24,314 bases of DNA from Bugula neritina (lineage: Eukaryota > Animalia > Bryozoa): the NCBI GenBank assembly GCA_964035545.1, contig CAXIUT010000066.1:1-24314 (forward strand). Direction: 5' to 3'. How positions within the stretch are numbered: position 1 is the first letter of the stretch; each line of letters begins with the position of its first letter. The translations under genes and the position numbers were made by a program. The notes under the pieces are model-generated. The model saw nothing but the letters and a program-made list of their open reading frames with translations. It was not told the DNA's origin and did no database searches. Positions 403 to 24,110 of the stretch are shown here, piece after piece.

Positions 403-1510
403 TCATTCCTCAATGATTATTTTATTTTTTAGTATTTTGTGAAGTTCTTTCAAGGCCTAAGGACTCTGAGTTTGTGTTTTTAGATACATTTGATAACTTA
501 CCTTTTTGAAAGCTGGGATGTTTTTGCTGATTGGCAAAGTTAAAAAAGGTTTCAAGTAAAGACCTATTGTCTTATTTAGCCTTCCAACTGTTTCCTCTTT
601 TTTGAGATAATCCATATATTTTTAAAAGTCAACAGTATATTCATCTTTTTCTTCATAGCATTTCAATATCTAAATAAATATAAACTTACGAATAGTTAGA
701 GTTAATTTTCAGAAAGTTCAGCAAAATCAATATTGAGTAAATTAATTTTGTTTTAAATGAAGAATAAGTTGAGCACAAGATCTGATAAGTTATATTTCAA
801 GCTGGAGATAACTGAATTAATGATTAGTTACTCATAATTGCCATTTATATTTTTTAATGTAAGGACCTTAGTTTTTGAAATGACTCAGAAGATTGTTAGA
901 AATAGCATTAATTTTCATTTTTAGGCTGTTTTTTTTGAGAATATAAGTTCCAATATGATAAGTATAACTCCAGGTAATAGACATAAGTTTTAGGATTTAA
1001 GAAATAGTTTAATTAAAAGCAAATCTTTTCTTAATACTCCAAAATGCTGTCTTTAGATATTTCTCCTCCTATATCTGGAAATCCAAATCCCTACATTTTA
1101 GTGGCTATCATTAAGGCAGCTAAGGCAATAAGTTGAAGATCTTCTTGCTTTGGATTGGGTGTCTTTTGGAAAAAGAGGTCTAAAAAGTAACTTGTCTTGG
1201 CAAACACTTCTCTTGTATAGTTGCATTTGGATGATTAAGAAAGGAGATATTTCATTATTTTCTTTTATTAAAAGAAAAGTACATATCGTTGAATTGGAGA
1301 GATCTTACTCTGAATTATCTTTTTGTAGTCAAGATGATAGGGTCCTTTCGGTAGTTATGGGTCAAGTATGGGAACATTCTGATGTAATTTTTTTTTTTCA
1401 AAAAAGTTGTGTTGGGTCAGAGTGGAGTTTAAAACTTGATTGGGAAGAGTTTCAGGGTTATGCTATTCTTGATAGGTAATGGAATTTCTACGAACTTCGC
1501 AATGTAGCAT
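403..1510 (-). CDS. Cyclin (cyclin N-terminal box protein)
   Basis: ATG at 1510, TGA at 403-405. Contains QRYKIMKYL...EVFAKTSYFLDLFF...DLQLIALAALMIATKMEG...SILEYEEKICFELNYFLNPKT, matching cyclin-box helices. Introns 1262-1282 (21 nt, inferred from alignment to the R..LI.WL motif), 812-831 and 670-689 (20 nt each). Confidence 0.88.
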
Positions 1511-1740
1511 CTCAAATCAAATAATTATAGCAAGAATAGTGTTGATTATGGCGCATGTTATCAATCAAACAAAAAGGGTATAAACAAAAGTTGATATTAT
1601 ATGATAAATAATCGAAAATATGTAGAATTTAAAAGTTAGACTTGTCTGTGTTATTATTTGAATCTGAGGTCAGTTTAAGTATTACACAAAAATGATTTGA
1701 ATTTGAGAAATAACGTAAATGTACATATTAAACAAATTAT

Positions 1741-1774
1741 CTAAGACTTAAAGAAAGCCTTTTTTAAGTCTTAG
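1741..1774. repeat. Inverted repeat / hairpin (15-bp stem with one G-T pair, 4-nt loop) in divergent intergenic region
   Basis: CTAAGACTTAAAGAA-AGCC-TTTTTTAAGTCTTAG. Confidence 0.75.
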
Positions 1775-1953
1775 TTAAGCATAATATCATCATTAAGACT
1801 TTTTGTACTTTAACTCAGATAAGGATAACAAATTCTACCATAATATATCAGATCATATTAATCAAAGAGTTTTAAATTTGATAAAATCAGCAAATACGAA
1901 ATGAATTAATCTATACTAAAAAATTTATATTTTTACTTTATCTGATATTAAAT

Positions 1954-2355
1954 ATGCTTCAATATGAATAATATTATATATAAGAGGAGATGCATCAAAA
2001 CCTATAGTTTCCTTTGAATCTTTAAGCCTACCAGGAAAGAGAACCGGCTGAAGAACAGAGAATTAGATTTCAAAACTATTTTCCAGCCTCCTAATATCTA
2101 CGCTCTGAGAGTGAACTGGTACCAATCTCAACTCATTGTTCATAGATTTAGAAAAACTATAAGAGTAAGATGGAGGAGTTCAATGTCGAATCTTTATACG
2201 AATCTGGCAAGATAAATATATATCCAAAGAAAAATACAGTAGACTTGAAGAATCATTTGAGCAAGAAGATGCAAAAGGTGGAAAAGAAGACATAGAAGGC
2301 GATGATTCAGATCGCAATAGGTTTATTGAAGAAGAAGTAGATGTAGGGTAAATGA
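1954..2355 (+). CDS. CCDC12: CCDC12/Cwf18-like pre-mRNA splicing factor, 133 aa
   Basis: Intronless ORF with TAR=Glu. Motifs IRFQNYFP and INIYPKKNTVDLKNHLSKKMQKVEKKTEKAM resemble the Cwf18-family motifs L.FRNY.P and NLAP.KP.WDLKRD..KKL..L..RT..AI. Confidence 0.75.
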
Positions 2356-2379
2356 ATAAATGATAATGATAGCATATAA

Positions 2380-4575
2380 TCAATTATCTTCCATCATTTA
2401 GTATAATTTAGTTGATGATTTTGCTATTCTGACTTTACTATTTTATATCCTGGAGATGATGAAGTTCATTTTGATGTCAGATTCGTCAGTATTTTGTTGT
2501 TTATTTGACTATTTAAGGACATTATTTGACTATCTAAGTACATTTCTATTTGATTATTTGAGTATTTGATTATTTTGATATTATTTGAATATATTTTAAG
2601 GCTATTTAGAAGGAACTTAATTGATTTGATTTTGACTTCTATAGGTTTTAATTTATGATTCTAGATATTTAATTTTATCTTTGTATTGTAATCTTTAAAG
2701 ATTGAGTTGATTTTAATAATTATTGATTTTATTCATGAAGTAATCTTTTTATTTATGATAATCTTGTTTGAGGTTGTTATACATTTAATTAAAAACTTAG
2801 TTATTATTGGTTTGATTTTATTTTTGATTCACTAGATTATTAATATGTTTTTATAGTTATTAAATATGTAATTAATATTATTTTTATCTTCTTTGATATT
2901 GTTCCATCATATTATCTCTAGCTGTTAGTGTCTTTTAATGTTATTATATTGCATCTTAAAGTAATTTTATCTTATCTGTTATATCATCTATTACATTATT
3001 CTTTATTTATATTACTTTTTATAACTTCAATATATCTTATTGCATTACTTGATTATTAAATTGTAATTTATTATTTTACTATTACAATGCTTTTATTTGT
3101 TATTTTTATATATTTTTAGTACTTAATTTTGAATTACTTTAGTTATTTACTTTTTTAGGAATAAGTTATTTCTTCTTTTTTAGATTTGATGGAGATAGAT
3201 TGCTCAGATGTTCAAGATAGGGTGATTTACTTCTTTTTATTGGTGATTTGTTGTTAGAATGGTTGTGAAGAGGAGATTTAGATCTGTTATTTGCTTTTTA
3301 TTTGCTTTTTAATGTTATTCTTTATGTGCTTTTATTTTTTTTATGGCTTATTTAGTGCAGTTGATATGTTCCTGATCGACAAGAGTTAGTTTATTTCTTT
3401 TGTTGCTCTGATTTCTTTAATTTTAGTGATGAATATTCTTTACTTAATTTTTATTCTTTATGAGGTTTTTAGAATGGAAGTTGAATATGACTTATTTATT
3501 TTTTTATGTGTAAATTGTTATTTTTTTGTCGATATTCTATTGAATTAAAAGATTGTAGCTTATTTTTAGATGATTTTTTGTTATTTCTTGATGCTTGAAT
3601 AGTACATACTGTATAATTTTATCCAATATAAATATGATTAATAATTTGATTATCCATAGTTATGAGTGGAAAGGGTTTATTTCTTGGTTAATAATCACTG
3701 ATTCCAAGTTCTCCATATGCATTTTTACCCCATATCCAAGCCTATCCTGACTAGGTAACAGCAAATCCATTATCTAGGCTAAGTTGAACAGATTTGAAAG
3801 GTTGTGACAATTTAGCAAATTATGTAAATTGATCATATGTTTAATTGTTATATTTGCCTTAAATATACAATCTTTTATTTTAGCTAATACCAACAAAATA
3901 ATCTGAGGCAGCAATTTATATAAATTTGATTTTAGTATCAACTTAGAAAGTAAGAGTAGGTTTATTTTTTTAACTCATATATAATTGACCATTATCTCTG
4001 AGAAAATAATTGTGATTGACTCCAGGTGCAATATCAATGATATTTTTACCATTTAGTTGGTTTATTAGTATAGGATCTGAATATGTTTTTGTTTAATACC
4101 ACTAGTTTCTTTTAAGATGATAAATCGAGTGAGTTGTAGTGATGAATATGTCGTTGTAGTTCATGTAGACGTTGATAGAGGGTTCTAGTATGTTTATTTT
4201 GGAGGGAGTTAGCTCTCCATTGACTATTTTTTATGAATTGAATTCCATGATGAAGGCTTATCCTTGTGAATTTATTATTACTATCATGTTGTCAGTAGTT
4301 GCTATATCGAGGACTGATTGGAAGGTGTTTATTTGGTAGATTGCGCTTTGGTAGTAGCATAGTAGAGGATTTGAAGGTTTAGGTAGGATGAGGATATAAT
4401 CGTGTCCTGGTGCACATTTGTGGATGGGCTGGTTGATGGGTATTTTTTGAGGGAGAGAATATGTTTTTTTATGGTTTTGTCGGAAGAGTCGATTGTTGTT
4501 ACCTTTGTTATTTATTAAGTACTTCCCCAGACGAACATTATCGTTAAATTTAAAATTATAAACCATATACTGCAT
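2380..4575 (-). CDS. RCC1-repeat (beta-propeller) protein with Ser/Lys-rich linker and C-terminal coiled coil, 731 aa
   Basis: Uninterrupted frame from ATG 4575 to TGA 2380-2382. RCC1-like blades IIDIAPGVNHNYFLRDNGQLY and GFAVTESGEAWIWGKNAYGELGISDYEPRNKPFPL. Confidence 0.82.
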
Positions 4576-4641
4576 ATTATATCAAGTTAATTAAATTAAG
4601 GTTCATTGTTAATACTTAATATTGATTTCTATAATAATAAA

Positions 4642-6657
4642 ATGAAGTAAGGGTTTTTTCAAAACATAAAAAACTTTTTCTAAAAAATAAATTCTCCTTC
4701 CAAGCCTTATGAAGATTAATCCCCTACATCAATCGATCCTAAAGTATATTTAAAAGCATTTAGATCATTAATTTCAATGTAACTTAACAAAAAAGTCCTC
4801 AGAAAGAGATCAACCAAGAAAACAATGAATTAAAGTACATAGATATAAAAGTAGTTAAGGTGATTTAGGTTTATTAATGGATTGGAGTTAGTTAGGTATA
4901 AGTAGTATGAATGTGGTTAGTGGCTAAATACCTGTTTTGGTTGATAGCAGGTATGTATAGACTAAAAATGCTTATGGTCATTTTTGTCGTTGTGTCCTCA
5001 TATTGACTGAATATCAACTTTTAATTAAGATAGCTGATGGGGTGATTCGGTTTTCATTGGGTAAGATTTAGAAAATGAGTAGACAAGTTAATTCCTAGAA
5101 AGATACTCAGATGATGATTAATTTGAAAGATGGGAGGGTTTTTAAGTTGATCGTTGGGAGTTAGATTTTGAGTAGAAATATATACTAAAAGATATAGACT
5201 TTTGTAAATGTTAAAAGTAAAAATCAATTCTTTGCTTTTAAATACTACTAACATAATAAATAACTGGAGAATCAGTACAAAGGATGGCAATTGTATGATA
5301 TGAGGGCATAGTACAAAAGAATGGGATTGAATTTGATGCCGCATACTTAGGATAAAATATCATAATATTGGGGATTATTCAAGTAGGTTGACAATTCTGG
5401 TGGTAAAATATGTCAAACCTATGCAAGCAAGATAGTAGTTCCTTCGAGAATGCCTTATGATAGTATAGTTAGATGTGCTAAATTCAGATGTAGATATCGT
5501 TTACCAGCTCTATCATATGCTTATCAATACAGAAAAGGTTAGTTTTCAGGTTTATATCGATCTAGTCAGAGCAAAGTAGGAGTGAGTAATAATAGATCTT
5601 CTGATGATTAGTTGTTATTGAAGTTGATTGGCAATCCTAAAATCGATCCTAAAACTTATAATAATGATACTTCTAGTCATATGTAGGTTAACTGTGTGAT
5701 ATATGATGCTCGTAACAAGATGGCTGCATTCGGTAACAAAGTAGTAGGTAAAGGGTATTAATCTGAATAATACTATTTGAATTGTAAGGTATAATTTTTG
5801 AATATTCCTAATATCCATGCTGTTAGGTAGTCTTTTAACAAGACTTTGAAGGCGGTTCATGGAGATGAGTTAAAATTTTATTCAGCATTGTCTGAATCTG
5901 AATGGTATGATTTTATATTTTTGATTATTGAAGGTGCAAGTAGAATTGTTTAATCTTTGATGGAGGGAAAAAATGTTTTAGTGCATTGTAGTGATGGATG
6001 GGATCGGACATCTCAGTTGTGTTCTTTGACTGGGATATTACTTGATCCTTATTATAGAACTATGGCTGGGTTTCAAGTGTTGGTGGAGAAAGATTGGATG
6101 CGTTTTGGATATCAATTTGCTGTGAGGATGGGTCAGGGAGTGAATAACTCTGATCAATAGGGTAAATCTCAAGTATTTTTGCAATTTTTGGATTGTGTTA
6201 GTCAGTTGCTTCATCAATTTCCTCATGATTTTTAATTTAATTATAGATATCTTCAGGAACTGGAGTAGTTATCACATAGTCTTCTTTTTGGTAACTTTTT
6301 ATGTAATTCTGAATTATAGATGAAAAATAATAATATATAGACTAAGACTGTATCGTTATGGAGTTATTTTATGAAGAATAAATAGAAATATATTAATCCT
6401 TATTACTTTAAGACTAATTTAATTTTGTATCCTTGTAGTTCTGGTAAAAATTTTCGTTTTTGGAAATAATATTTTTTACAGTATGTAGATGGTTTTTAAG
6501 ATATCTATAATATCCAGCCTTGCAAGTTTAATTAGTAATTATGAATTAAAATAGATGTACTTTGGACGTTATGTACTAGAGACTTAAAAAATAGAAAAAT
6601 AAAATGTAGAAACAAGAAGACAAATACAAAGATACAAAAGCTAAATAAAATAGTTGA
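4642..6657 (+). CDS. Myotubularin-family phosphoinositide 3-phosphatase (N-terminal PH-GRAM-like region, intact catalytic loop)
   Basis: Motifs [54 protein letters not shown] and TVSLWSY. Inferred 20-nt introns at 4744-4763, 4835-4854 and 6535-6554. If the last intron is not spliced, the stop is at 6542-6544. Confidence 0.95.
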
Positions 6658-6742
6658 TGCTGATAATTTTTATTCATTATCTATGTTTTTATTGATTTTA
6701 ATTATTTTTAGAGATTTTCCGCTTAGTATTATTATTATATTA

Positions 6743-9700
6743 ATGAGTGTGAAGGAAGAAGAGTTTCCTTTCGAGGAATTTATCGAAGCTTTGCAATAAG
6801 GTGGATCTTTAAAGAAATCTCTCAAAAATATACTATCAGCAGTCATTGAAAAGAATATGTAAAGTTAATAATATAAAGATATTGGACCTACTCAGCCGTA
6901 TCAACCATTATAGAAATATTAAAAACAAAAGATTAAGAACCAATTATTAAATGTCGATCAATGGAAGCTGCTACTATTCTATTTTAAACTTGTGAGTATC
7001 CGGTTTTTGTTTTTGTTTAAGTTTATTTGCTTCCCATTTTATTGGAAGTTTCAAACTATAAGGGCAGGAAATCATAGGAGCTAATATCATATTATTTTCA
7101 ACAAACTCAAAGAAGTGAAGATTCTCCTTAAATGAAACAAATCAGTCTATAATTTGTTGAAAGATGTCATTAGCTTATATTCTACGCTGCTAAAATTAAA
7201 CCTTTTAGAACTGTTTAAACAGAAGAACTTCAACAAGAATCTCTATTCTTTAAAAATGCTAGATTACTAAAATAAAGAGGAACAGAAGAACCTAAAAAAT
7301 ATACTTGGTGTAGCTAAACCAAATAAAAAGAATATAGAAAGCGTTATCTTTCTAATTTAAAAAAGTTTAATTAGTAATCAGATTAATGGACCTAATTTTT
7401 ACTAGTTAACTTGTTAGAATAAATTCAAACTGGAAAGAAATAACTATTATAGCTAAGATTACTTTTACCCTATGGATAAAGTTTTATGACATCAGCTATT
7501 ATTAATTTTTGTTAGGAAGAACTTTTAGATATTTCTTAATCTCTTGATTTGAAAAAGAAATATCTGGGTATTTTGAATTAGTTAGTTAGAAATGGGGATA
7601 TCTAAGCTATAATAATGGTTAAAAATAGTTAGATTGTACCAACTATTGTGTCTCATATCAGTAAATTTCCTGGACAGCAAGGAGTTAATGTCGGATAGGG
7701 TATTTTTCCTTAAGTTAAGGCAACTAAGCAAGTAAAAAAATAGTTTTATTGTGACTTTTTAAGATGTCTTTAAAACTGGGCTACCTCTCTACCTGAAGAT
7801 TACGATTCAGATGATTTCAATATTAAGAGTATCTATGAACATTTAAAAATTGCTAAAAAGTTTAAGTTTCCTTAAAATCTTTTAATAAATAGGTATAAGA
7901 AGGAAATTTTGTAAAATATTTAAAAGAATAAGGAGAGAAATGATCGTTTGCTTTAAATTTTAGAGAACATGTAAGAAAGTAAGCAGCAATCAATAAGTAA
8001 GCCAGCTGTATCTAAAATGAGTAATGTTTTACAGAAGACAACTTTACTAGCACCAGCTCAACTATAGATCAAGCTTGAAGATATCAAAAAAAGTCTTAAA
8101 TAAATAGTAATAAATCAATAAAAAGCAGAAGCTAATGAAAAAGCATTGCGTCAATTCAAAGATAATTGGATAACATATTTATAGTCTCTTGATTTTGATG
8201 GAACTGACTAGGAACATCTTGAGTAATTGATAGGAAATGGTTAGAAATGTGTCTAACAGATTCAATTGATAGTTCCTATTTATGCAAATTTATCTAAAGG
8301 AAAAATTAATTATAGATAATTCAAAGAAAGGGTTTGTGATTCATTAGAGTTTCACAATGATGTGAGTCAAACTAATATGAGTATGGATAAATCTAAATCA
8401 ATCAAAGTGAGTAAAATAGCTTTAAGTAAGATGGGTAAAAGTAAAGTAGCATCCAAAATGGGTAATTCTTATTTATAGAAAATAAAAGCTAAGAGTAAGA
8501 TAGGAGATAAGACTAGAATGAATATGAGTAAAGCTATGGATCGAAGTAAGGTAATGGAAATAAGCAATATGTTGGAAAGAAGTAAATGCATGGATAGAAG
8601 TAAACATAATATGGGAGATACTAGTATGAAGAAAGGTTACTAAAAGACATTAGATTATCAAAAAATATAGAGTGCTAAATAGTTAGAATCAGAAAATATA
8701 GATGAATCTATTACAAAAAATTATAAAATATAAGAAAGATAAACAATAACAAACTTAAAACAGCATTTTTAGACTCCTAAAACTAAAAATATTGTTATTG
8801 AAGATGTAATTACATCAAAAAAACATCAAATCCATTCTAGTAAAGATATTTATGAAGATTAAGATGAAAAAATTATTAGAATTGCTGATTATTAAGTAGA
8901 ACCTTATGAATAAAAAAAGCCATCAACAACTCCAAAATTATCTAGTAGTAGAGATAAAAGTCATAATTCTGGTTCAAAAATATTGGGTAGAAGAAATAAT
9001 AGTAGACTTGATAAATCAGGTGATAGTAAAATAAGTATAGGAAGAAGAAGTATCAGTGGTAAGAAGATAAAATAAACATCTTTATTGAAAAAAAGTCAAA
9101 TATAACAAAATAAAACTCAAAAAATAAGTTAAAGTTCACAATCAATAGAGAATAAAATTAAATAAAATGAGACAATTGCCCTTAAGAGTGGTATTAAAAA
9201 TGAAGTTTCGATAAAAAAGAGTTAAAAATAAGAATAATACGATAAATTTAATGTAGAAGCGGGAGAAATATCAAGTATTCATTCTAATTCTAATATCAGA
9301 GTAGTTCATCATTCTTCAGAAAAAAATCTTAACTTAACTAATCAAATTAGCGATCTTAATCATTCTAAATAGGCTTTCAAAGGAAAATAAATCAAATAAA
9401 TAAAATAAACGAAATAAAAGAAATAAATAAAATAAGTTGTTTAATATGTGACCCAAGATTTTCAAGTAGCTCCTCTTGTTGGAGATTATTATCAAGAATC
9501 TCACAAAAAAGATAAACATGTTAAACAATAATTTTCCAAAAAAAGATTAGATGATTCAAGATCAAAAGAAAAACCTGAAGAAGGGCCAAATTTTCGAAAC
9601 ATTTTTATGAAAAAGACTGAACAGATCGAGAAAAGACATTTTAATTAAGTTAAAAAGAGATAAACTTCAGAGAATCATTATATTGTAAAAAAATAACCTT

Positions 9701-10833
9701 AGAGATAATCAAGATACACTGCTAATGGACTTTAGGCAGCAGCTAGAGAGGGATTTGTAAGCCCAACGAGTCGTAATTCTTTTAAGAATACTGATAATGG
9801 TCAGGTTTCATCAAGTAAACTAACAGATGTCAAGTACTTATAATAAAAAAAGAATAAAGAGATTCTGGCTTTACATTCTAAAATAAAATAACTTGAAAAA
9901 GAATCATTATCAATGAAAATGAAATTAGCCCATAAGGATAATGAAATTCGATCATTTAAAAGTAAAAGTGGATCAAATAATGGTTCAGAGAGAGGATTTG
10001 CTCATTTCACAACTGCAAGTAATAGTAATTTCTAAAAAAGTTCTCTTAGAAGTAGTTCAGCAAGCAGAAAAGGTGAAATGACTCAATTTCAGAGAGAAGT
10101 TTAAAGTGGTTATAAGCAATATCTGGAAAGAATCAAAGGAAATACTTTTAGAAAAAGTTTACTGAAGTTGAAGTGTTTGGTACATAGAACTGACTAGATT
10201 TAAATAGGTTGTTTATCTCAGCGTTGTGAGTAGATGCTTGAATCAACTCTCTATGTCACACCACATAGATTCGATATGATAGATTTTTCAATTTCAGTGA
10301 TCCATGATCATCGATTGAAGATAAAAGTCTCTCCATAGAATGTTAAAGTTATTCCTGCTATGAAACAGCAAAAGATTCATTTGATGATCTAAGTGGATAA
10401 AATACCTTTTTGTGTTCCATAGTTCTAGATTAATTATAAAGCTGATTCCTAGTACTGTTCTAACTATAGTCGTTTAACTTTACCTTTGGCTTTTAATAAA
10501 TTTTGTATTATTCGTCCTTTAAAAGTATAATCTAAAAATGATCGACATATTGATTATGTGAAGACAGATAGTTTTAAAATAAACATGAAGGTAATTAGAC
10601 TAGATAAATTATCAGATGCATTTCCTAATTTTGTATGTTTACCTGCAATAAAAGGTCGCTAGTATTCAATTTTAGGAGCTACTTGTTAATTTGGTTCTTC
10701 TTGTTTTAATTTGATGGTTAATATAAGTGAAAAGATGTCATGGATTGAAGGGTATTTACTGAAGGGGGATTCCAAAGTAATGAATTTTTTAATATGCACT
10801 TTAAAGGAAATAATCGATGGTTCTAAAAAATGA
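6743..10833 (+). CDS. Large putative trafficking adaptor (~1356 aa): VHS/ENTH-like helical N-terminus, GAT-like bundle, long Ser/Lys-rich linker, alpha-adaptin-appendage-like C-terminus
   Basis: One 20-nt intron (6859-6878), then an open frame to TGA 10831-10833. C-terminal FRKSLLKLKCLVHRTDEIEIGC...QQKIHLMIEVDKIPFCVPEFEINY...LTLPLAFNKF resembles the AP-2 alpha ear. LENWA...IYEHLK..KKFKFP resembles the end of a VHS domain. The gene model is firmer than the domain calls. Confidence 0.7.
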
Positions 10834-10900
10834 TAACTATTTATGCTGATTTTATTTTATCTGATGATTATTTTACTATTAATAGTTAAGTAATTTATTT

Positions 10901-12490
10901 ATGTTACCTCACAATAGCTATCAATCTTATCAAACATTACCTCATCCTCAACAACAATCAATTGATCTTAATTTTAATGTTGATTGGAATACTAGAACCC
11001 TAAATTTCAACATGCCTCTTGCAGCCCAGCCTTTTGCCAAAAAGCAATAAGTTCCGATGGTATATCCAACTCGTCAATTAAGTCCAGGTTACTATCCTAA
11101 TCAATCATATCTAAGCTCAAATCATCCTTCATCACTACCAGGTTATCCAATGACAGCATCAAGGCCGATTACCAATTATGGTAGACCTTAACAGATGCAA
11201 GCATCAGAGTATCAACGGTATCCTTCTGATAATTCTGAGATAATGAGACTATCAAGCAACAAGAATGTTAAATCTGCAAATGATACCTATCCTGAAACAT
11301 ATAATTCTTTTTCAATAAATGTTGAGAAATCTCTTGAAGCTGTAAATTGCGTCATATGTGATAAACCTATTAAAAGAGAACAGTTTCAAGCTCATTTAGA
11401 TACTCATAAAGGGAAAAAAGTTGGATCACATCCCATCAATACATCTCATAATAGTAAAAAAAATTAAAGCAGAAATTAAGCTTCTAGGGGAGGACCTTCC
11501 TCTTTTTCAGTTAGAAATCAAAATTCATTTGCTCAAGCTGCATAACTATACCAGTAAAGTTCTTCTCCTAATTCACTTAGTTTTAAACCTAACAATTCAA
11601 GTTTTTCTAGAAGTAATCAAATAAACAAATCATCTTTTGAGAGATAGATCGAAGAATCTCAATCTAGGATAGTATATGTCCCTAGAGATTTATCTTCTCG
11701 AATGGTAAGTGGAGGACAATCTGACTTTAATTACAGTCAATCTATTGAACAGCAAATGATACATCAACCAAGTTTTAAAAAATAGGTTAAAGAGCCTTCA
11801 ATATCTCATCCAAGTTTAAGTTTGCCTCATTCTAACCGTAATTCTCTTTCAGCTGGTGTTATTCCAAGTATTTCTCAAAGTAATAGGGGTAATACTATTA
11901 ATTTTTCTCCACACTAAATATCAAGACAGAATGATAAAAGTAGATCTTCTCAAAATCAATTTTCTAGGCAAAGTGCCGCTAACAACAACAAATCTTTAAA
12001 AAAAACATTAAATATCAGAGATAATAGTAGACAATAAAAGAGTCAAAGTAGAAATAATCCTTTGAATTTTCAAGATTTGCATCAAACATAGTCTCAAATA
12101 TATAGACCTCAGCAACCTAAACTTACTCGAACTGAGAACCAGAAGAGTTCTCTTGAGGATTGCGATCAAAGCATTATTCATCATTTGAATAATCTTTCTC
12201 TATTTAGCAAGGAATCATCTATTGGATAGTTAAAGAGATAGTTGAAAATTCGATAAATTGTAGAGTAAGATAGTAGTTCTTAAGATGATTTGTATTATTC
12301 AGTAAAACCAACTCCATCAGCTCGTTACTATACTTCAGTTGAGCATTCAAAGCATCCTAAGAGAATGTCTGATACAAAATATAGCAATGGTTTAAGTCGT
12401 ACTAAACTTCCTGTAAACTATTTAGCTGTAGAAGAATTTATTCAAAATCCATTATACTATTCTTGTTATAGATCAACTCATCATAGATGA
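10901..12490 (+). CDS. Ser/Gln/Pro-rich low-complexity protein with a single C2H2/UBZ-like zinc finger, 529 aa
   Basis: Continuous frame (TAR=Glu) joining the ORF-track fragments 11195-11467 and 12290-12490; contains CVICDKPIKREQFQAHLDTH. Confidence 0.78.
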
Positions 12491-12609
12491 TATTTATGTT
12501 TAAATTAATTATTTTATGATCTTATATCTATTTGATATTTATTTTTCCAATAAAAGAGGAATAGCATTTTATTTTTAATATTTATAAAACATTATTTTTA
12601 AAATTTCTG

Positions 12610-13977
12610 ATGGGCTGGTTTCCTATTCTTTAAAACTTCTCTTCTGATCTAAATATTCCTCTTGACATTGTTAAAATACTAATTGCTTTCTTTGCTTCAA
12701 TTACTTTGAGTATGTCTTTTGATATTTAGGTCCTCTTTTTAGAATAGTTCATGATAGAAACAAAAGACTTGTTTTGGGGATTTTTGGAGGAATTATTCTT
12801 CTAAATTTCATGCTCTAGGAGTGGTCTTTTTTTGTTCTAGGTGGCATAGTTATTCCTTACTTCTTAATGATTAAGTCATCTAAACCTTTTGTGGTAAGTG
12901 CAATATGTGCCACTATCTTGCTGCTAATAGTTCATACTCATCGCTTTATGTAAGTTCAAAGTTAATATTTAGAGTTCTTTATGTGAAATGGGCTATGGAC
13001 TGTTCATTGTATGTGATGATATTGTCAACTAAACTGACTTACTATGGAAAATGGTTAGAAAAATAATAAAATAAAAAATAAACATCATTTTTAACATTTC
13101 TAGCATATAATCTATTCTATCCTAGCATACTAGCTGGTCCTACTTATAGCTATTAACTCTTTGAATAATATCTTTCAGTTCCTATTGTCAAACCAATTAA
13201 ATTATTAAAAGCTTTACATCCTTTATTTATGGCATTAGGTCTTGCTACGATATCTGTCTTGGTAATTCCTAATTTTTCAAGTACATGGATTATTTAAAAT
13301 TAATTTTATTTAAATATGCCTGTTTGGCAAAAGTATTTATTTTTTATTCCTTTTGGTTTTATATATAGAGCTAAATACTACTGTGCCTGGTATTTTGCTC
13401 AAACTTCAGCAAATTTAGCTGGTTTAAGTCAAAGTTCAACAGGATAATTCGACAAAGCTATTTCTGGTAGTATAAAATTTGAATCATAGCCAAATGCCAA
13501 GTTAAAAACTGAGTATTGGAACAGTAGTATTCAAGTATGGTTAAGAGTGGTAGTTTATGAAGGTTTGATTGCTAGGATGAATTCTTTTTATGCTTTATTT
13601 GGAACTTTTGTGATATCAGCTTTTTGGCATGGTTTGTATATCACTTATTACATATGTAAAAATAAGTATACTTAGTTTTTATTTCTTGGGGAATAATTAA
13701 TCATTTGACTAAATGGTGTTACAAATGGTGTCAACTGTTGCCTAAATAAGTCAGAAATTCAAAACTATCAACTTTTATAACTTGGTTCATTACGATTGAA
13801 TTACTGAGTCCCTTTGCTTTAGGTATGCTTATTCTAGACCTAAATTTAGCTATGAAATTCTATGCTGACTTAAACTATTCTCCTTTTATTATTTTATGCA
13901 TCTTATTGGTCCTTAGCTTTGTTGTTAAACCACCATCAGCAAAGAAAAATAAAATAAAATAGGCTAAATCAGTGTGA
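12610..13977 (+). CDS. MBOAT-family lysophospholipid acyltransferase, copy 1
   Basis: Motifs YPSILAGP, KYYCAWYF, WNSSIQVWLR..VY and SAFWHG (catalytic His); multiple hydrophobic segments. Introns 12710-12729, 12950-12972 and 13656-13675. Confidence 0.92.
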
Positions 13978-14126: not shown

Positions 14127-15493
14127 ATGAGTTGGTTCCCTTTTATGTAAGCTATTGCTTCTAATCTTAACATTCCTGTCGATATCGCTAAAATCATATT
14201 GGCCTTCTTTGCTGCAATTGCCTTAAGTAACTACATCCAATAAATAGGTCCTCTTTTTAGAATAGTCCATGATAAGAACAAACGACTTATTATGGGTCTT
14301 ATTGGTGGAATTATTTTTTTATGTTTTATGATTTAGTAGTGGTCTTTATTCGTGCTAGGTGGAATAGTTGCTCCTTATTTCATAATGATTAGATCATCTA
14401 AACCTTTTGTAGCAAGTGTTATATGTGCTACTGTCCTATTGTTGATAGTCCATACTCACCGTTTTATGTATTTTAGTGAATATTTAGGATTCTTTATGTG
14501 TCATGGGCTATGGACTGTTCTGTTTATATTATGTTCTTGGTAACTAAATTAACTTATTATGGAAAATGGTTAGAAAAATAAAATAATAAGAAATCAGCTT
14601 GTTTATGGACTTATCTAGCATACAATCTCTTTTTCCCTAGCATCCTTTGTGGTCCCACATATAGCTATTAGCTCTTTATCTAGTTCCTTTAAACCCGTAT
14701 TAAAAGACCAGTTCAAATAATGAAAACTCTAAAACCGATGTTTATTGCAATTATTTTAACTATATTCACAGTTTTTACTCTTCCAATATTTCCAAGTATT
14801 TGGGTCACTTAAAATTAATTTTACTTGAACCTAGCATTATGGCAAAAGTTATTATTTATTGTTCCTTTAGGATTTATATATCGAGTAAAATACTATTCTG
14901 CTTGGCATTTTAGTCAAGCATCAGTTAACTTAGCAGGTTTAAGTGAAAGTCTTTAAGGATAGTTTGACAAAGTAAGTACAGGATCTCTTTACTTCGAACT
15001 TTAACCAAATGCCAAGTTAAAAACCTAATATTGGAACAGTAGTATTCAAATATGGTTAAGAGTGGTAGTTTATGAAGATTTGACAGCTAGAATAGGCTCT
15101 TCTTATGCTTTATTTGGCACCTTTATAGTATCAGCTTTCTGGCACGGAATCTACTTAATCTACTATGTATGTAAGTCTTTATTAAACTTAGTATTTGTTC
15201 TTTGGGGAATTCTTAACCATTTAACTAAATGGTTCTATAAATGGTCACAAGCTTTACCTCAATCGATTAATAGCTCAAAAATATCTACTTTTATGACTTG
15301 GCTTGTCACTACAATAATAATGAATACGATAGCTATGTCAGTTGTGATTCTTGACTGGGAACTAGCGATAAAATATTATTCTGATCTCTACTATTCTCCT
15401 ATTATAGCATTAGTCGGTTGTCTTCTTTTGAGTTTGGTTGTTAAGCCACCATCTAGGAAGTCAAAAAAAGAAAAATAGGCCAAAATTGATTGA
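14127..15493 (+). CDS. MBOAT-family lysophospholipid acyltransferase, copy 2 (tandem paralog)
   Basis: Colinear with copy 1, with the same motifs (WNSSIQIWLR, SAFWHG) and introns at the same positions: 14227-14247, 14468-14487 and 15171-15191. Confidence 0.92.
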
Positions 15494-15529
15494 TTAGTTA
15501 ATAAATACCATAATATTCAATTATGTAGA

Positions 15530-15829
15530 TCATGCAGCGTCATCAAGACTTATCATCTGGAAAACTTTCTCAATGAGATCAGCAAATTACTTTCTTGAGA
15601 TTCTGTTGTCTCCGTTTTAATCGATTTCGTCAAGAATTTAATCGACTTCTTCACGTGTAGGATTATCAACTCCTATTTATTTAGCAATTTGCACGAGAAC
15701 TTGCTAGAATTCTCCTCGTTAGAGGTAGCCACTTCCATCAATATCCACTTTCCTGAAAGCGTCTTCCATGAGCTTTTTCATTTTTTTTGCATCTTTCATC
15801 ATCTGTTCAAATTTCTTTTCTTTAGGCAT
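15530..15829 (-). CDS. Small two-EF-hand calcium-binding protein, 99 aa (copy A)
   Basis: MPKEKKFEQMMKDAKKMKKLMEDAFRKV-DIDGSGYLERGE-FEQVL...EI-DENGDNRISRKE-FADLIEKVFQMISLDDAA-TGA; two 12-residue EF-hand loops. Confidence 0.92.
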
Positions 15830-15973
15830 CGATCCAATAATATTTAATTATATCTCAAAAATATTATGCTTAAATATAAAAACCCTATATATTTTTGTTT
15901 ATTTAATCAAAGAATTAACTCTTGATGACATTTACTTAAATATATTTGAAAAGAATTTTATCATATAAATAAA

Positions 15974-16790
15974 ATGGAGTAAAGAAAAAGTCGAAACATG
16001 TGGGGAGTAGTATTTTAAGGTTTTGAAGAAAGACGAATAGGTTCAGTGATTCATAACTTTAAATTATGTAGTGATAAATAAATCAAGACAACAGTAATAT
16101 CTAATCCTCAGATGTTTAAGATATTATCAAAATTATTGACAATATATAAAGAAAAGAATATGAAACAAAACTTAGAATTTCTCTTCGTAAAAATAAAAGT
16201 ATCTAGACACTAATAATATTGGAAGCAAAGGTTGCTAGATATTAGCAAAGCAGGCTCAATGGAGCAATTTAGAATATTTACAATTAAGTATTAATCAAAT
16301 AAAAAGATGATAATTAGATAAGAGACAAAGGATGTAAATAATTATCTAAAAGCACTTCATGGAAATCAATCTAAAAACTTTATATTTGTACAATTATTTT
16401 TATTCATCTAATAACAAAATCGGTTAAAAAGGAGTCAAATACTTAAGTAAAGCAACTCAATGGAAGCAACTTGAATCATTATATAATAGTAAAGTTGAAA
16501 AGATATAGATTCTAATAAGATAGGAAACATTGGGTTAAGACATCTATCTAAGGAATTCATTTCCAATTATTAATATCTCTAGCTGAGTACCAATATCATA
16601 AAGCAGATGAAAATGAGATAAGAGAGAAGGGATGTGAATTTTTATCTCTAGCTAGCCAGATGAACAAATTGAAATATATTTAATTCAGTTATATTTTGAT
16701 TATTAAGATCATAATAAAATTGGAAATGTTCGTCTTGGATATTTATCAAATTTTGAAATTCGAAATTATCCATATGACACTGAATAATGA
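15974..16790 (+). CDS. Leucine-rich-repeat protein, one ~27-aa repeat per exon
   Basis: Repeats such as TNNIGSKGCEILAKQAQWSNLEYLQL, DNEIRDKGCKELSKSTSWKSIEKLYI and NNKIGEKGVKYLSKATQWKQLESLYN. Phase-1 introns at 16068-16087, 16187-16206, 16288-16306, 16388-16407 (ends in AT, not AG), 16489-16508, 16587-16606 and 16688-16707. Confidence 0.85.
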
Positions 16791-17048
16791 TAAAATAAAT
16801 ATAATTTCAGAATTAATTAATATTTTATTAAATAAATAAACGTTAGTATCGAATATTGAAAAAAAGGGAGTTAACAAATAAAAGAGATATGAGATTTTAT
16901 AACTTTTAGTTGAATTATTACCCAAAAGTTTTTAGTATGATGTTTTTTCTTCCTTTATTGTTAAGGATTCAATAAAAAAGTTTAAAATAAGAAAAATAAG
17001 TCAAAATATGATGGATAAATTTGTAAATATTTTAATATTTAATGATTT

Positions 17049-17347
17049 TCATCTGCAGTTTTTCTAAGGCTTATCATTTGGAAAACTTTTTCTATCAAAT
17101 TAGCAAATTATCTTCTTGAAATTCTGTTATCAAAGTTTTAGTCAACTTCGGATAGCATTTATTGAACTTCTTCATGAGTTGGACTATCAACTCCAATTTA
17201 TTTAGCAATTTGGAAAAGTACTTGTTAGAACTCTCCTCTTTAGATACCGTTTCCATCAAAATCAACTTTTCTGAAAGAATCTTCCATTAATTTTTTCATC
17301 TTTCTCGTATCTTTCATCATCGACTCAAGACTCTGTTATTTAGGCAT
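17049..17347 (-). pseudogene. EF-hand protein copy B, diverged and possibly decaying paralog of 15530-15829
   Basis: Colinear with copy A, but EF-loop 1 is one codon shorter (DFDGNG-IERGE) and the TGA equivalent to copy A's stop (17049-17051) is out of frame by 2 nt. Confidence 0.65.
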
Positions 17348-17525
17348 CTATCAAACAAAAATTAATTATAAATAAACTATTTTTAATATTTATGCATAGA
17401 AAAGCTGAAATAAATCCATAAATGTTAAGCATATGAAAATTTATATTTAAATCTATAGTTTTGAACTAGAAATGAAATAGAAATTAGGCATTGATATTTA
17501 ATAATTTAAATAATTGTGAATCAAG

Positions 17526-18104
17526 ATGTCACACGGACCAGTTCTTAAAGCAAGTGAAGAAGAAGAGTTAGGACTTCTCAAAAAAGATATTTCTAAGGCA
17601 GAAATCGACCGCAAGAAGAACACTCATAAAGAAGAGTTAGGAGAAAAGGTTTTAATGTATGCTAGAAATTTGTTTTGGATGGTTGTTGGAGTTCTGACTG
17701 TATACTACAGCAACTTCTTTCATCATCTTTTCCATAATCCTAAAATAAATGAACTTTTCTTTGAGATCAGTATGACAGGATATACAATCATTCTTTGTTT
17801 AATGCTTTTCTCTTCATTCATTATGCCAAGAATTTCAGGTATAACTGATATAGAAGAGTATAATCCTAAGTTGGTTTCAGTAGGAGCTGTTGTTGGACTT
17901 GTAAGTGTAATATCTTTGATTGTAGCTATCTGGCCCATTTGGGGATGGTGGTCTTTAGGCATTTTCATAGCTTTGTGGAAAGGCTTTTTCGGGATGAGTG
18001 TCTTTTTGCCCAAAGGAGATATTGGAAACTTCCTTTTCCTGGCTATCAATGTATCTGTAATCCTCTCTTTTTATGTGATCGAACACGAAGGCTATCTTCA
18101 TTGA
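17526..18104 (+). CDS. TMEM128: TMEM128-like multi-pass membrane protein, 192 aa
   Basis: Intact intronless ORF. The pattern FW......T.YY..FF, GI.D.E.Y.P.L, IAIWP.W.WW resembles TMEM128 as recalled; not searched. Confidence 0.7.
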   Translation: MSHGPVLKASEEEELGLLKKDISKAEIDRKKNTHKEELGEKVLMYARNLFWMVVGVLTVYYSNFFHHLFHNPKINELFFEISMTGYTIILCLMLFSSFIMPRISGITDIEEYNPKLVSVGAVVGLVSVISLIVAIWPIWGWWSLGIFIALWKGFFGMSVFLPKGDIGNFLFLAINVSVILSFYVIEHEGYLH

Positions 18105-18201
18105 TTTGAGATCAATATATTTTTTAATTCAAAATTATTGAAATATCATTGTATTTTATGGTTAGTATTAAAATAATAATAACGTTAACTCTCAATAATT
18201 G

Positions 18202-18993
18202 ATGAGTGTTAGATCATAAATAAGTGAATCTTATATTGTCTCTTAACTCTATAAAATACTCGAAACTCTTAAAGAATAAATTATTAAAAACAAGTAAGGT
18301 CACAAATCATAGTTATAGCAGCTCAAACTTATCATCTCAGATAAAGAAAAAGAAAATTAGGAGCTTAAAAATATCATATCAAAGAAAAATTAAGAGTTAT
18401 AAACTAAAAGTCAAACTATTTAATAGTTTTCAAGTCAACTAAGAACTCATAGATATAAGCATTAAAAACAGGTTTCCTAGTTCTACTATGATACTCCAAA
18501 TATGGCTTCTCATAAGATTCAACCAAATACATGCAAAAATCTGGTCATTAATATCAAAAAATAGCATAAAAGGAAAGGTTCTTAAGTTATTGAAAATTAA
18601 TATAGTAAAGAATCAAATAAAAGATAAATATATTTAACATCAGTAACATCAACCAATTCTAAAGGTTAAAAAGGTGATAAAGTAGTGAATTATTTTAGAA
18701 GTAAGAGAAGTGAAGATAGAAATAAAGAGAATAGTTCTTAGGGAAAGCTAGCTCTTTCACTATCTCTTAAAAGTCCAACAAATAATAAAAGTCATAAATC
18801 ATTTGAGCCAAATTATATGATAAAGAGTTTAAAGAGTCCAACAGAAAGATAGAAAAAAATAAAACTAACTCTTGATAATTATCAATCTCACAAAAAAGTA
18901 TAAAAATCAGGCAATTAGTATTCAAAAAAACATATATCTATAAATTTAGGAGGAAAGATAGTCCATTCTAAGTAAATAAAAAACTGGAGATGA
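18202..18993 (+). CDS. Hypothetical protein, N-terminal coiled coil and basic Ser/Lys-rich tail, 263 aa
   Basis: TGA-free frame from ATG 18202 to TGA 18991-18993; heptad-like ELEQLKLIISDKEKENEELKNIISKKNEEL. Confidence 0.75.
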
Positions 18994-19030
18994 ATAATTA
19001 GAAGAAATTCATTTGATTTTGATTTATTTT

Positions 19031-20713
19031 ATGAATCTAAAAGTTGATAATAGAAATATAATTTTACTTAGAAGTAAATTGATGCAAAATTGCTTTTTTA
19101 ACGATCAGCAAGCTATTAACTAGGCTTAAGCTAGTGATGATTTATCGACTTTCATCCAGATCTTTAGAAGATGCATCTCTATAGCATAATTAATAGCTAT
19201 TCTTGTCTAAAAATAGCAAGATTACTCTCATCACACAGACAAAATAAAGCAAATATTTGAGTAGTTGGAGCCACTGAAGTAAAAATATTAGAATATAACT
19301 CAAAATCAAGTCATAAAAACAGTGTATATCGTATTTAATTTAGAACATTTCATCGATTTGCATGCAGACTTCTAGAACTAATATATCTTTATAGTTCAAA
19401 ATACAAACAAGTACTACATTCTCATTCATATACGTGTTTTGTCAACAGTCTTAATGAGATTTAAAAAACTATTAAGCTAAATCAATAATCTAAAATGTTT
19501 CAATAAATCATTAAAATCACTGAACTTTCTTTTCTTAAATTTTGTGTTAATTGCCAAAAAAAAGTCAAAATAGTAGAAGATTAAAGTTCACAAAAGTTTT
19601 AAAAAACTTGTACGTAAATAAAGAAAAATATTATCAAGTTTAAAAAGAGATAAAAGAAACGTGACACTTTTAAATAACTTTCCTAACAACAAAATTAAAG
19701 TTAATAATCACAAGAATAACCATAAATTACATTGAGTCCTATTCCTATGAGAACTAAATCAAATAAATTACCAACATTTAATAGGTATATTATTGTATAT
19801 TAAGATAGCTTTTGGATATTCAAAAAAGATTTTAGACTCTTAAAGGATTAGATCTTGAATTTTCTAGTTTCAAAACAGAGTATTTTTTGGCTAAAACCAA
19901 TCAAGATGTTTATTTTAAGGAGTATCTTAAGAGAAACTAACCTAACAAAAAAATAATAACTGCTTATCATGACGATTTTTATCTTTTTCAAAGAAAAAAG
20001 GTCTATAAATAGAACAAAAAAAGTATAAAATATATTATCTAGATAAATTGAATCAACTCATAGCAAGTAAGACACTAGGCCATAATTCTATTTCAAATAT
20101 AAATAAGATTCAATAAGAGTCACCATAAAAAATATTATAAAGCAATGAACATAGCCCTTTGATAAATTTTAAATCAAGAACTCCTACTATTAAACAACTA
20201 CCTAAAAATACTATCTACAGTGAGTAATAAGTATCATCAAAATCTGTTAAAATATAGAAATAGCAACTTAAAATGAAACAAGTTGAACTATCTCTTTAAA
20301 AGAAAAAGAATAAAAAGATTCCTCAGAATATATTCAAAAATATATCAAAAGTACAACCTATATGTATCAATCAATCATACTATAATGCAACCTAAAATCC
20401 TGGTAAAACTTCATTGGAATTCATTCAATCTAAACTAAGAATTTAGCCTTATTATAAACATAAAAATAAAACATAGTAAAGTTAGGAAAAAAATATTATG
20501 CATTTCTCATTTATGGATAAATAAGGATCAAAAAAGGAGTTAGATCCTATAAGATAGGCAATAAAATCTAGATCAACTTTCAAGGGAAAGTACTTATAGG
20601 TCAATTATCAGAATAAGAACAAATAGGCATCATTGAAAAGGAAAATATTTAATCAAAACTCTTCAATAACTAAGATACACATTAGAGCATCATCAAAAGA
20701 CAATAATATTTGA
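19031..20713 (+). CDS. Hypothetical protein
   Basis: Frame maintained by three 20-nt GT-AG introns (19324-19343, 19785-19804, 20023-20042); TGA at 20711-20713; no family recognised. Confidence 0.68.
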
Positions 20714-20766
20714 AGTATATTCTATCTCTTAGAATAATATTTGATTTTATTGATAAAAATATATAA

Positions 20767-22577
20767 TCAACCTATTTTACTTAAAGCTCTTGATAGTTTA
20801 TGTGCAAACTAATCTACTTAAGCTACACTATCAAATGATAGTACTCCCATTTACTTTTTCATTCCAAAATATCCACTTATTCCTTTCTATTTGCTACAAA
20901 TTATAATTTATCTTCCTTTTTTACTTAATTTTATATCACCTAATTTCAAAGTGGCTATTTTATCTTAATTTTAAAGATGAAGGTAGTAATTAGAAGTTAG
21001 TACTACTACAACTTTAAATATTTTTTTAGAATCAAAATTGTTAGTAGATGTTCTAGAACGATTTAATATTTGTTTTGATTCATACTTTGAATCATTTTTG
21101 CTTTAGTATAATATGTCATTTTACTATTTACTCATAATTGAGCTACTTGTTTTCCATTTTGCTTAATTTCTGTATAAAATGAGATCGTTATTCATTTATA
21201 TAGTTGATAGGAAGATAGTATTTTGGAGGGAATCGCTAAAATCTTGAAGAATTATATCTAATTTATTACTATTTTAGTATCTTATCTATTTTTTACTTTA
21301 CATTATATTGTACAATTCAATAGGTATCATAGTTAGTAGTACTTATATTAGTTATTCTTTTATTTTAGATTAACTATCAGTTTATTTCAAAGTATTTAAT
21401 TTTAAATTCAAGATCTAATTTTGAGAGCAATAGCATTTTTAATAAGCTGTAGTATAGTTAATAAGACATTATTTTAATATTTTTCCTATTTGAGCTTATT
21501 ATTTTGAAAATATTCCCACCATATAAGTTATAACCTTTCCATTAAAGTCATTGATGTACTTTAGATATGCATTTTATCTTTAAATCAAATATTTAACTTA
21601 AAGATATTTGTCTTTAGTTATGTATTGATTTCTAGAACGTATTTATTTAGATATAAATTTACAATCAACTCTTTATTTCTAATTTTGTAATCGACAAATT
21701 ATCATATCTTCCATTTATAGTTATATTCTATCTATCACTCTTATTATTTCTTCTTAGATATATCTTTATCTCTTCTATCTACGTTACTTATCTATCTTAT
21801 CATAAATTTACATTTTCTCCAACATTGCAGCATCTTTTAGTATTATTCTTTGATTATTTTATAAAATTAGGTTCTTTGTTATTTTCTATTCATATTGGAT
21901 TATTTTAGTTTTATTAAAGTTACTTTTTCATCGATATTAAATTAATCCATATCATGATCATCTTCTATTTAATTGATTGAGTCAAGACGTCTTAGAGATT
22001 ATATTTATTGTTTCATTTTGACTTACATAAAGGTGATATATATTTTAAGATTTTATAGTGATTTGATACTGTATAGTTTTAGTTTGTTGTAAAGAAATTT
22101 CATGCATTTAACATGGGGTTTATAGTTTTTTTAATTCATGTTTAAAAAGCTTAGTAAAGAAGTTGAAAAATTAGAAGTATCTTCTGTATTTATTTCATCA
22201 TAAAATTTACTACATATTGACTCTTCATGAAGAGTTATTGTTACTTGTGAAGGTAAACTACTATTAGATTACAATGATGATATAGGTTCCATACTTTTTA
22301 GCTCATTATTATCCTATTAATTTTGTTATTATTAAGCATCCTATAAAATTTAGCGTACATCTAGGAGAGGTTATACTATTTTTGAGTCAATAGGTAGAGA
22401 ATTATCAAGCGATATATTATTTTTGGATCCATTTAAAGACTAGTTTTGAGATCTGTCTAGACTAAAATCAATTTATTAATGATGCCAATCGTTTGTATTC
22501 ATGGTTTCTATTTCATTAAAGAGGTTATTTCTTGCTCGAGAATCAACATCTTACGCAGATGCAAAAGAATCGTCCAT
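20767..22577 (-). CDS. Hypothetical protein with IQ-like motif and possible C-terminal PH-like fold
   Basis: ATG 22577, one 20-nt intron (21792-21811), TGA 20767-20769. The spliced junction gives KMLQCWRKYKERREKR. The C-terminus has beta-rich segments followed by a terminal helix (VAEVDEFAHKLSRAL). Confidence 0.68.
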
Positions 22578-22652
22578 CTATATATTATATTACTTAAATA
22601 GCTATATTTAACTAACTCTTTAATTTTCTCTTTTTAAATATTATATCATAAA

Positions 22653-22721
22653 GGGGTTGGGGTTGGGGTTGGGGTTGGGGTTGGGGTTGGGGTTGGGGTT
22701 GGGGTTGGGGTTGGGGTTGGG
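22653..22721. repeat. Internal telomeric tract (GGGGTT)n, 69 bp; right telomere of the 1-22721 minichromosome
   Basis: Perfect repeats, G-rich on + as expected for a right end, terminating in TTGGG exactly like the window end. Confidence 0.95.
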
Positions 22722-23253
22722 TGGAAATCTGTGTCATCTCTATATCCTGAACAGTGATAGGTTGCTCTGGTATAGTCATATTTAGGTCTAAGTTAATAAA
22801 AATATACCTTCCACCGAAACAATTTGGGCATCGAGGAATTTGTCCAAGAGCTACTCCATCAGAGCATTTCCAAACTAAATCATCTTTGTTTCCAGACATT
22901 GATTGTAGATTTTTCCTCAAAAGATCTTTTAATTGTTGATTGGAATAATTCTCAAACTTTCTTTTGTATTCATTGAATACTTTCCACTCAGATTAGGTAT
23001 ATCCTCTTGGAACTTTAGGTTATTTTTTAAATTTCTTTTCTCTTAAAGCCTTCTTAGGTGCTGCTTTAACCACTTTCTTTGTCAGTTTAGATGATGCAAT
23101 AGTTTTTTTAACCTTTTTAGCAGGCTTAGAAATAATTGTTTTAACCTTTCTTGTTGATTTTTTGAGTTTTGGAGCTGGTTAGGATCTTTTAGAAGTTTTA
23201 TTTTTCCCTGAATTAGAGGCTAATCTTGAGGATCTTTTGACTACTTTTGCCAT
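22722..23253 (-). CDS. PADR1 (PARP zinc-finger-3-like) domain protein with Lys-rich N-terminus; 3'-truncated at the telomere junction
   Basis: MAKVVKRSSR...KPAKKVKK...AAPKK...QLKDLLRKNLQSMSGNKDDLVWKCSDGVALGQIPRCPNCFGG-[intron 22788-22807]-RPKYDYTRATYHCSGYRDDTDFH, then runs into telomere repeats with no stop and without the fourth Cys. Confidence 0.85.
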
Positions 23254-23339
23254 TAAAATCTAATATAAATATTAAGCGGTCAATTTAGTATTAATTTAAT
23301 ATATTATCAGAATAAATAAGATAACTAAAGGGAAAATAA

Positions 23340-24110
23340 TCAACAAAATTTATTTTTCCTTTCCAGAAATCGATCTTTACTTCCATCAACTCTGAGATCT
23401 TTCATATATATTTTTTGAGAATAATTATTTTTGATTCTAGTTTAAAATTCTATCAACTAATTGAGTTAAAGATGTCCTTTATTATTGAATCTTCTTTTAC
23501 TTTATCCTTTTTTGATTGAATCTTTGATATGACTTCCTTATTAATTTTTCATATTTTTGCCATAGAAAGTGACGAGTTAAGGTACTTTTTTTTATTATTT
23601 TTATTTAGAAAATTTGAATCCATGACCGTAGAGAGTCATGGCAGCATTGAAATTCAAATGATTATTTTTTTTATTTAAACTATTAGAAATAGGTTTGATT
23701 CTAAAGTTATGTTTTTAATGAGATAGATTATTGAAGTAGGCTGTATTTCTCATTTTTTATTCATTTTTTATTTTACTAAATAAATTCTTTTTTGGTTCAA
23801 TAACATCTCTAAATGTTTACTTAGTTAATTGTTCATTAATATTATTTTTTTATTTTTTTTAGTCATCACCGCAATCGATTGATTAGTTTACACTTTATTC
23901 TTATATTTATTCTATAAAATAATTTGTTCCTGCTATGTTTTGATGTTGACTATGGCTCAACATACTATTTTCATATAAACTTTATTATTTCTACTATTCT
24001 TCTTATTAGTTGTTTTTGAAGTTTACATTGGACATGTACTCCTAGAGAGTCATTCCTTTTGTAAATGTAGAACCTGAAACTTCTGACTATTCGCTTTGGA
24101 CTTTACTCAT
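23340..24110 (-). CDS. Hypothetical Glu/Lys/Asn-rich protein, 256 aa
   Basis: TGA-free frame from ATG 24110 to TGA 23340-23342 under TAR=Glu. Confidence 0.7.

Follow-up and report, generated by a model that had tools for sequence, protein, structure and literature searches.

The 24,314-nucleotide (nt) contig CAXIUT010000066.1, deposited in an assembly for the bryozoan Bugula neritina and analysed here over its whole length (positions 1-24314, the window; G+C 27.6%), is a complete, telomere-capped ciliate macronuclear chromosome, since it starts with (CCCCAA)n and ends with (GGGGTT)n. Its sequence indicates that this chromosome is almost certainly translated with NCBI genetic code table 30, in which UAA and UAG (together UAR, or TAR in the DNA) specify glutamate (Glu) and UGA is the only regular terminator. 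In this chromosome UAA and UAG are the majority Glu codons. The peritrich code itself is already described and not new. A preliminary description of the window had proposed that TAA and TAG both encode Glu and that TGA is the sole stop, and three independent lines (conserved protein columns, ortholog comparisons and strain variants) agree with that proposal.

Reading frames and codon usage

With TGA taken as the sole stop, the longest frames in the window reach 1327, 733, 571, 540, 445 and 425 codons; no frame exceeds 194 codons with the standard stops, and comparably long frames do not arise when TAA alone or TAG alone serves as the stop. If TGA occurred at the 2% frequency that base composition predicts, a TGA-free frame of 1327 codons would have p ~3e-12. 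Across ten genes counted (4256 codons), TAA makes up ~4.1% and TAG ~1.6% of in-frame codons, and therefore TAR codons are not avoided. Under table 30, Glu is written in these genes as GAA 118 times, GAG 40 times, TAA 173 times and TAG 66 times, with TAR accounting for ~60% of all Glu codons. Reading TAR as Glu yields 9.3% Glu and 3.9% glutamine (Gln) in the ten proteins, whereas the corresponding shares with TAR as Gln would be 3.7% and 9.5%.

Decoding of TAA and TAG

The meaning of the TAR codons was estimated from a myotubularin-family phosphatase gene. A 68-residue catalytic piece was searched against 1.84 billion representatives, the best 150 hits were used, and the complete TGA-delimited frame, in which X replaced each TAR codon, was aligned by script to these 150 homologs. 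Because the looked-up hits span eukaryotes so widely (fish, insect, amoebozoan, Anaeramoeba, Corallochytrium, and Ichthyophthirius), the alignment columns derive mostly from standard-code organisms. The summed log-odds for TAA are 8.4 for Glu (E), -1.9 for Gln (Q), and -2.5 for lysine (Lys, K), and those for TAG are 8.0 for E, 2.2 for aspartate (Asp, D), and 1.4 for Q. As a control, every sense codon with at least 4 aligned columns was decoded by the identical procedure, and 36 of 37 were assigned correctly, including CAA/CAG as Gln, AAA/AAG as Lys, TAT/TAC as tyrosine (Tyr, Y), and TGG as tryptophan (Trp, W), the last across 7 columns. CAR, AAR, and TGG are thus read normally and TAR as Glu, in keeping with the earlier assignment of the window to table 30 and not to table 6. 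The TAA at 5759, the TAG at 5609, and the TAA at 6233, which had been singled out as conserved Glu positions, are the codons named and fall in columns of homologs where Glu is found (Table 1). Conserved Gln sites are written CAR (CAG 5567, CAA 6182, CAA 6215), as had also been claimed.

Fragmentary hits led to four related contigs, likewise with in-frame TAR: a JGI metagenome contig with an MBOAT gene (L001), a Logan contig with a myotubularin gene (L003), a 42.7-kb JGI contig from a relative with 40% G+C (L006), and a Logan contig with EF-hand and TMEM128 genes (L008). L001 was reached through the only fragment returned by a word search with an MBOAT piece. Gene order in L006 is that of the window (RCC1-like, myotubularin, Ser/Asn-rich, EF-hand, TMEM128), and L008 keeps the divergent EF-hand/TMEM128 pair. 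The comparison with L006 covers five genes, with 53% identity over 1658 aligned codons. In it, the window's 66 aligned TAA codons face E 22 times, TAR 11 times, D 8 times, Q and K 3 times each, and Tyr twice, and the 23 aligned TAG codons face E 14 times and D 3 times. With substitution frequencies taken from those same alignments, the lead of Glu over the runner-up is 31 nats (TAA) and 19.5 nats (TAG). TAR codons are far rarer in the L006 relative than in the window, and L006 is without the 1327-codon open reading frame (ORF), the two MBOAT genes, and the leucine-rich-repeat (LRR) gene that sit between the shared genes in the window.

The two EF-hand genes of the window (EF-A and EF-B) and the MBOAT paralogs allow individual sites to be followed. 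Between EF-A and its L008 ortholog (91% identity), 5 of the 6 TAR codons face Glu and the remaining one faces TAG, and the TAR codons of the L006 and L008 EF-hand orthologs reciprocally face GAR in the window. Position 12 of a canonical EF-hand loop must be Asp or Glu (PROSITE PS00018). In the second loop of EF-A this position is the TAA at 15587-15589 (minus), as had been noted before, and it is Glu in both L008 and L006; position 12 of the first loop is TAG in L006. A similar reciprocal pattern links the window MBOAT genes with L001, where F-E-x-TAR in the former stands opposite F-TAA-x-E in the latter. Paralog alignment upholds the pairings proposed in the preliminary description between GAG 13511-13513 of MBOAT paralog 1 and TAA 15026-15028 of paralog 2, and between GAG 12819-12821 and TAG 14337-14339 in the same two genes. 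The GAA at codon 4 of EF-A likewise corresponds to a TAA in EF-B, located at 17336-17338. In the cyclin gene, the TAG at 1091-1093 (minus) was checked and is as described, coming straight after ...IATKM. All codons and positions cited in the preliminary description are right. A search of solved structures with the cyclin piece gave no match, and the corresponding search with an MBOAT piece returned human MBOAT7 as the sole match, which carries Arg at the queried site and is uninformative.

Variation within the species was read from contigs of four public runs, ~1% divergent, mapped to positions 4829-10828. Of the listed coding variants in this interval, 24/36 are synonymous in the two reading frames concerned, each of which passes through numerous TAR codons. 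Two variants involve TAR, namely TAG>TAA at 7632 and GAG>TAG at 9748, and both are silent if TAR is Glu. TAA and TAG also stand in for one another when paralogs, orthologs, or strains are compared.

Termination at TGA

TGA is absent inside the true-frame conserved alignments to relatives and abundant in wrong-frame or antisense alignments. The TMEM128 orthologs of L006 and L008 terminate at the identical TGA, and the stops of the EF-hand orthologs coincide or lie one codon apart. The earlier claim that every complete gene ends in TGA therefore gains from the stops shared with orthologs and fails at EF-B, which is discussed below. At ~two thirds of the gene ends listed (11 of 15 usable ones) TGA is followed by T, compared with 41% of all TGA in the window, although the sample is small (p ~0.01).

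Alternative codes and points against table 30

The commonest ciliate reassignment, presumed ancestral in Oligohymenophorea, is UAR as Gln (PMC10553269; table 6), and a few TAR codons do face Gln (3/66 TAA in L006; Q in 14/116 homologs at column 6233). Gln nevertheless lies below Glu by 10.3 (TAA) and 6.6 (TAG) log units in the profile decoding and by 46 (TAA) and 32 (TAG) nats in the L006 ortholog likelihood. Together with the use of CAR at conserved Gln columns, these values led to the rejection of table 6, which retains next to no probability; the TAA at EF-hand loop position 12, a site restricted to D or E, is also contrary to it. A split code with TAA as Lys and TAG as Glu occurs in the same ciliate class, in Oligohymenophorea sp. 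PL0344 (PMC10553269), and Lys is a minor partner of TAA (7/118 in symmetric counts). This code was rejected on the profile, L006, and EF-hand ortholog comparisons and has scarcely any chance of applying: the conserved TAA columns are Glu (83/88, 101/116), K scores far below E in the profile, K falls outside the five best candidates for TAA in L006 (>50 nats below E), and the free interchange of TAA and TAG between paralogs, orthologs, and strains is contrary to a split assignment. Table 29 (Mesodinium, UAR as Tyr) was likewise rejected, with Y outside the six best residues for either codon and only 2/66 TAA facing Tyr in L006. A Blastocrithidia-type use of UGA as Trp was rejected on the lack of in-frame TGA in conserved alignments and on TGG being read as W.

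Several points weigh against the table 30 reading as a whole. The support for the codon meanings is comparative throughout, and tRNA, eRF1, and rRNA genes are all absent from the window; a tRNA gene scan and an Rfam scan of the window returned no tRNA gene, no Rfam family, and no rRNA gene. The decoding machinery and the lineage of the source must consequently be inferred. From established knowledge of such codes, UAR would be read by tRNA-Glu-derived tRNAs with UUA and CUA anticodons, and eRF1 would recognise UGA only. Additionally, EF-B lacks an in-frame TGA for 110 codons beyond its conserved end, and the first in-frame TAA beyond that end is at 17039-17041, so UAA may have an occasional terminator role. 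EF-B (ATG 17347, minus; frame 16709-17347) has GCA-GA-TGA where EF-A has GCA-TGA, and because of this 2-nt difference its frame passes the TAA at 17039-17041 and overlaps the 3' end of the LRR gene that converges on it. EF-B may owe its form to an indel in the assembly, may be a paralog in decay, or may genuinely stop in some other way. Decay would fit its 69% identity to the L008 ortholog (91% for EF-A) and the loss of one residue from its first calcium-binding loop.

EF-B also speaks for an ambiguous code, in which UAR would be Glu within genes and UAA (or UAG) could double as a stop close to the 3' end of the mRNA, a role that UAA has in Blastocrithidia. Without such termination, EF-B would carry a 110-codon hydrophobic tail into its convergent neighbour, and TAR occurs within the last 6 codons before TGA in 8 of 14 genes (counted from ORF ends) compared with ~29% expected. 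Real TAR stops, however, would put the next in-frame TGA ~50 codons further on; in those 8 genes the distance is 0-6 codons, and the TGA positions are shared with orthologs. Both MBOAT paralogs also keep 'TAG-Ala-Lys' between the last Lys and TGA, and EF-B is more simply explained by its 2-nt indel, whether real or an assembly error. The ambiguous code is therefore considered very unlikely. There is a small chance that either the source is not a peritrich and UAR as Glu arose independently in another oligohymenophorean lineage, or UAA termination persists in a context-dependent, residual form, as EF-B might suggest.

Gene content and chromosome structure

Pfam families were assigned by searching the stop-free pieces of long frames separately, and frames reading through TAR were handled with X at those codons. 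The features of the window are listed in Table 1.

Table 1. Features of the window and TAR codons at conserved sites of the myotubularin gene.
Feature	Positions	Strand	Details
Left telomere, (CCCCAA)n	1..75	+	read directly; regular tract 6-75
Cyclin N-domain ORF	800..1516	-	13 in-frame TAR; piece 1094-1234 matches Cyclin_N positions 44-87/127, E 6.5e-7
cwf18-like small gene, 3' part	2152..2355	+	TGA end; Pfam cwf18 E 1.3e-5, 26.3 bits (cut-off 26.1)
RCC1-like and coiled-coil protein	2380..4581	-	733 codons, 51 TAA, 7 TAG, TGA stop
Myotubularin-family phosphatase	4829..6544	+	14 TAA, 19 TAG, TGA stop; Pfam PF06602 (Myotub-related) E 3.5e-31
TAG in myotubularin gene	5309	+	Glu in 52/56 homologs
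TAG in myotubularin gene	5609	+	Glu in 38/70 homologs
TAA in myotubularin gene	5759	+	Glu in 83/88 homologs
TAA in myotubularin gene	6233	+	Glu in 101/116 homologs
TAG in myotubularin gene	6317	+	Glu in 63/96 homologs
TGA-delimited ORF, family unassigned	6850..10833	+	1327 codons, 64 TAA, 27 TAG
Ser/Asn/Gln-rich protein gene	10868..12490	+	540 codons, TGA stop
MBOAT paralog 1	12610..13977	+	Pfam PF03062; 20-nt intron 13656-13675; paralog and L001 alignments
MBOAT paralog 2	14127..15493	+	Pfam PF03062; alignments
EF-hand gene A (EF-A)	15530..15829	-	99 codons, 5 TAA, 1 TAG, TGA stop
RNI-type leucine-rich-repeat gene	15974..16790	+	~20-nt introns (e.g. 16187-16206); end ...GAA TAA TGA; three-frame reading
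EF-hand gene B (EF-B)	17039..17347	-	7 TAA in the conserved 99 codons
TMEM128 gene	17526..18104	+	Pfam PF20479 E 2e-22; TGA stop
Internal (GGGGTT)n tract	22653..22721	+	same orientation as right telomere
PADR1-type (PARP-like zinc-finger) gene fragment	22722..23385	-	Pfam PADR1_N E 3.4e-6; 20-nt intron 22788-22807; spliced reading made by eye
Right telomere, (GGGGTT)n	24204..24314	+	

The RCC1 matches of the RCC1-like gene in Pfam are weak and below threshold, and this gene has an ortholog in L006 with 42% identity over 706 amino acids (aa). The Ser/Asn/Gln-rich gene has a weakly similar syntenic ortholog in L006, and no Pfam match was found among the pieces tried from the 1327-codon ORF. Three introns are confirmed by homology or repeat structure (13656-13675, 16187-16206, and 22788-22807, the last on the minus strand); each is exactly 20 nt long and runs GTA...TAG, ending in (C)TTAG or CTAG. 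Among GTA...TAG intron candidates, a length of 20 nt is the most frequent on the plus strand and ties with 18 nt for most frequent on the minus strand.

The TMEM128 gene differs from the other genes in its codon usage. All 14 of its Glu codons (17526-18101) are GAA or GAG, with zero TAR and zero Gln; given a TAR share of 62% of Glu outside this gene, the absence of TAR has P ~1e-6. TAR is likewise missing from the orthologs in L006 and L008 over the stretches that align, and the G+C content at third codon positions (0.34) is the joint highest, with EF-A, among the ten genes counted. An exact look-up of the TMEM128 protein found no record, and the ESM Atlas yielded generic TMEM128 clusters only. 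Relatives of it form 73 clusters in assemblies from ENA, JGI, and Logan, with identities of 33-95% (51% or more in every cluster except four), many of them called as 149-aa forms from an internal Met. These shortened calls probably arise from bacterial gene callers that stop at upstream TAR codons, and the clusters point to mis-called genes, in public protein sets, of a large clade that has been sampled widely.

The window also contains an internal (GGGGTT)n tract close to its right end. The ATG of the gene to the left of this tract lies ~73 nt from it (sequence read by eye), a spacing comparable to the ~95 nt between the ATG at 24110 and the true right telomere, and the PADR1-type gene on the minus strand is broken off in mid-domain at the tract. 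Based on the tract orientation, the ATG spacing, and the truncation of the PADR1-type gene, positions 1-22721 look like a complete 22.7-kb chromosome to which a 1.6-kb end piece of another molecule (22722-24314) would be joined. The junction would be either an amplification or assembly chimera or a real fusion.

Source lineage and consequences for annotation

Most likely the organism is a peritrich or, more broadly, an oligohymenophorean. Telomeres of the C4A2 type occur in Tetrahymena and Paramecium and fit Oligohymenophorea. Of the 17 myotubularin hits looked up by name, the best-matching named one comes from Ichthyophthirius. A peritrich origin is highly probable; the telomeres, the introns, the Ichthyophthirius match, and the reported distribution of the code fit this origin but prove nothing. 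Relatives that form a broad clade in metagenomic data also use in-frame TAR, and many metagenome and SRA contigs that were fragmented by bacterial gene callers belong to such relatives.

The assignment matters chiefly for annotation. Use of the standard code or of the usual ciliate code makes every gene of the chromosome, and of the genome, unreadable, and a table 6 translation would place Gln at more than half of the Glu sites, catalytic and calcium-binding ones included. Biologically the result holds little surprise, unless the source proves to lie outside the peritrichs.

Comparison with known systems

Table 30 has been described from Vorticella and Opisthonecta. It has also been reported for Campanella umbellaria and Carchesium polypinum (PMC10553269), and among ciliates the use of UAR as Glu has been reported for peritrichs only (PMC10553269, PMC11687900). 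The window matches the peritrich code in UAA as Glu, UAG as Glu, and UGA as the only regular stop, with no difference in the code itself and with one gene (EF-B) that lacks a proximal UGA. Three peritrich genomes reportedly show a narrow intron-length distribution resembling that of Paramecium (PMC13685798), into which the three 20-nt introns of the window fit. Oligohymenophorea sp. PL0344 reads UAA as Lys and UAG as Glu (PMC10553269); UAG as Glu and the UGA stop are common to it and the window, and the ciliate class is likely the same, but UAA in the window is Glu and not Lys. Tetrahymena and Paramecium (table 6) share with the window UGA as sole stop, G4T2 telomeres, and an AT-rich genome, and differ in that UAR in the window is Glu, not Gln. 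Blastocrithidia, in which UAR is Glu, UGA is Trp, and UAA also serves as a stop (PMC12153298), has UAR as Glu in common with the window, but UGA is not a sense codon in the window, and the organism is a ciliate and not a trypanosomatid.

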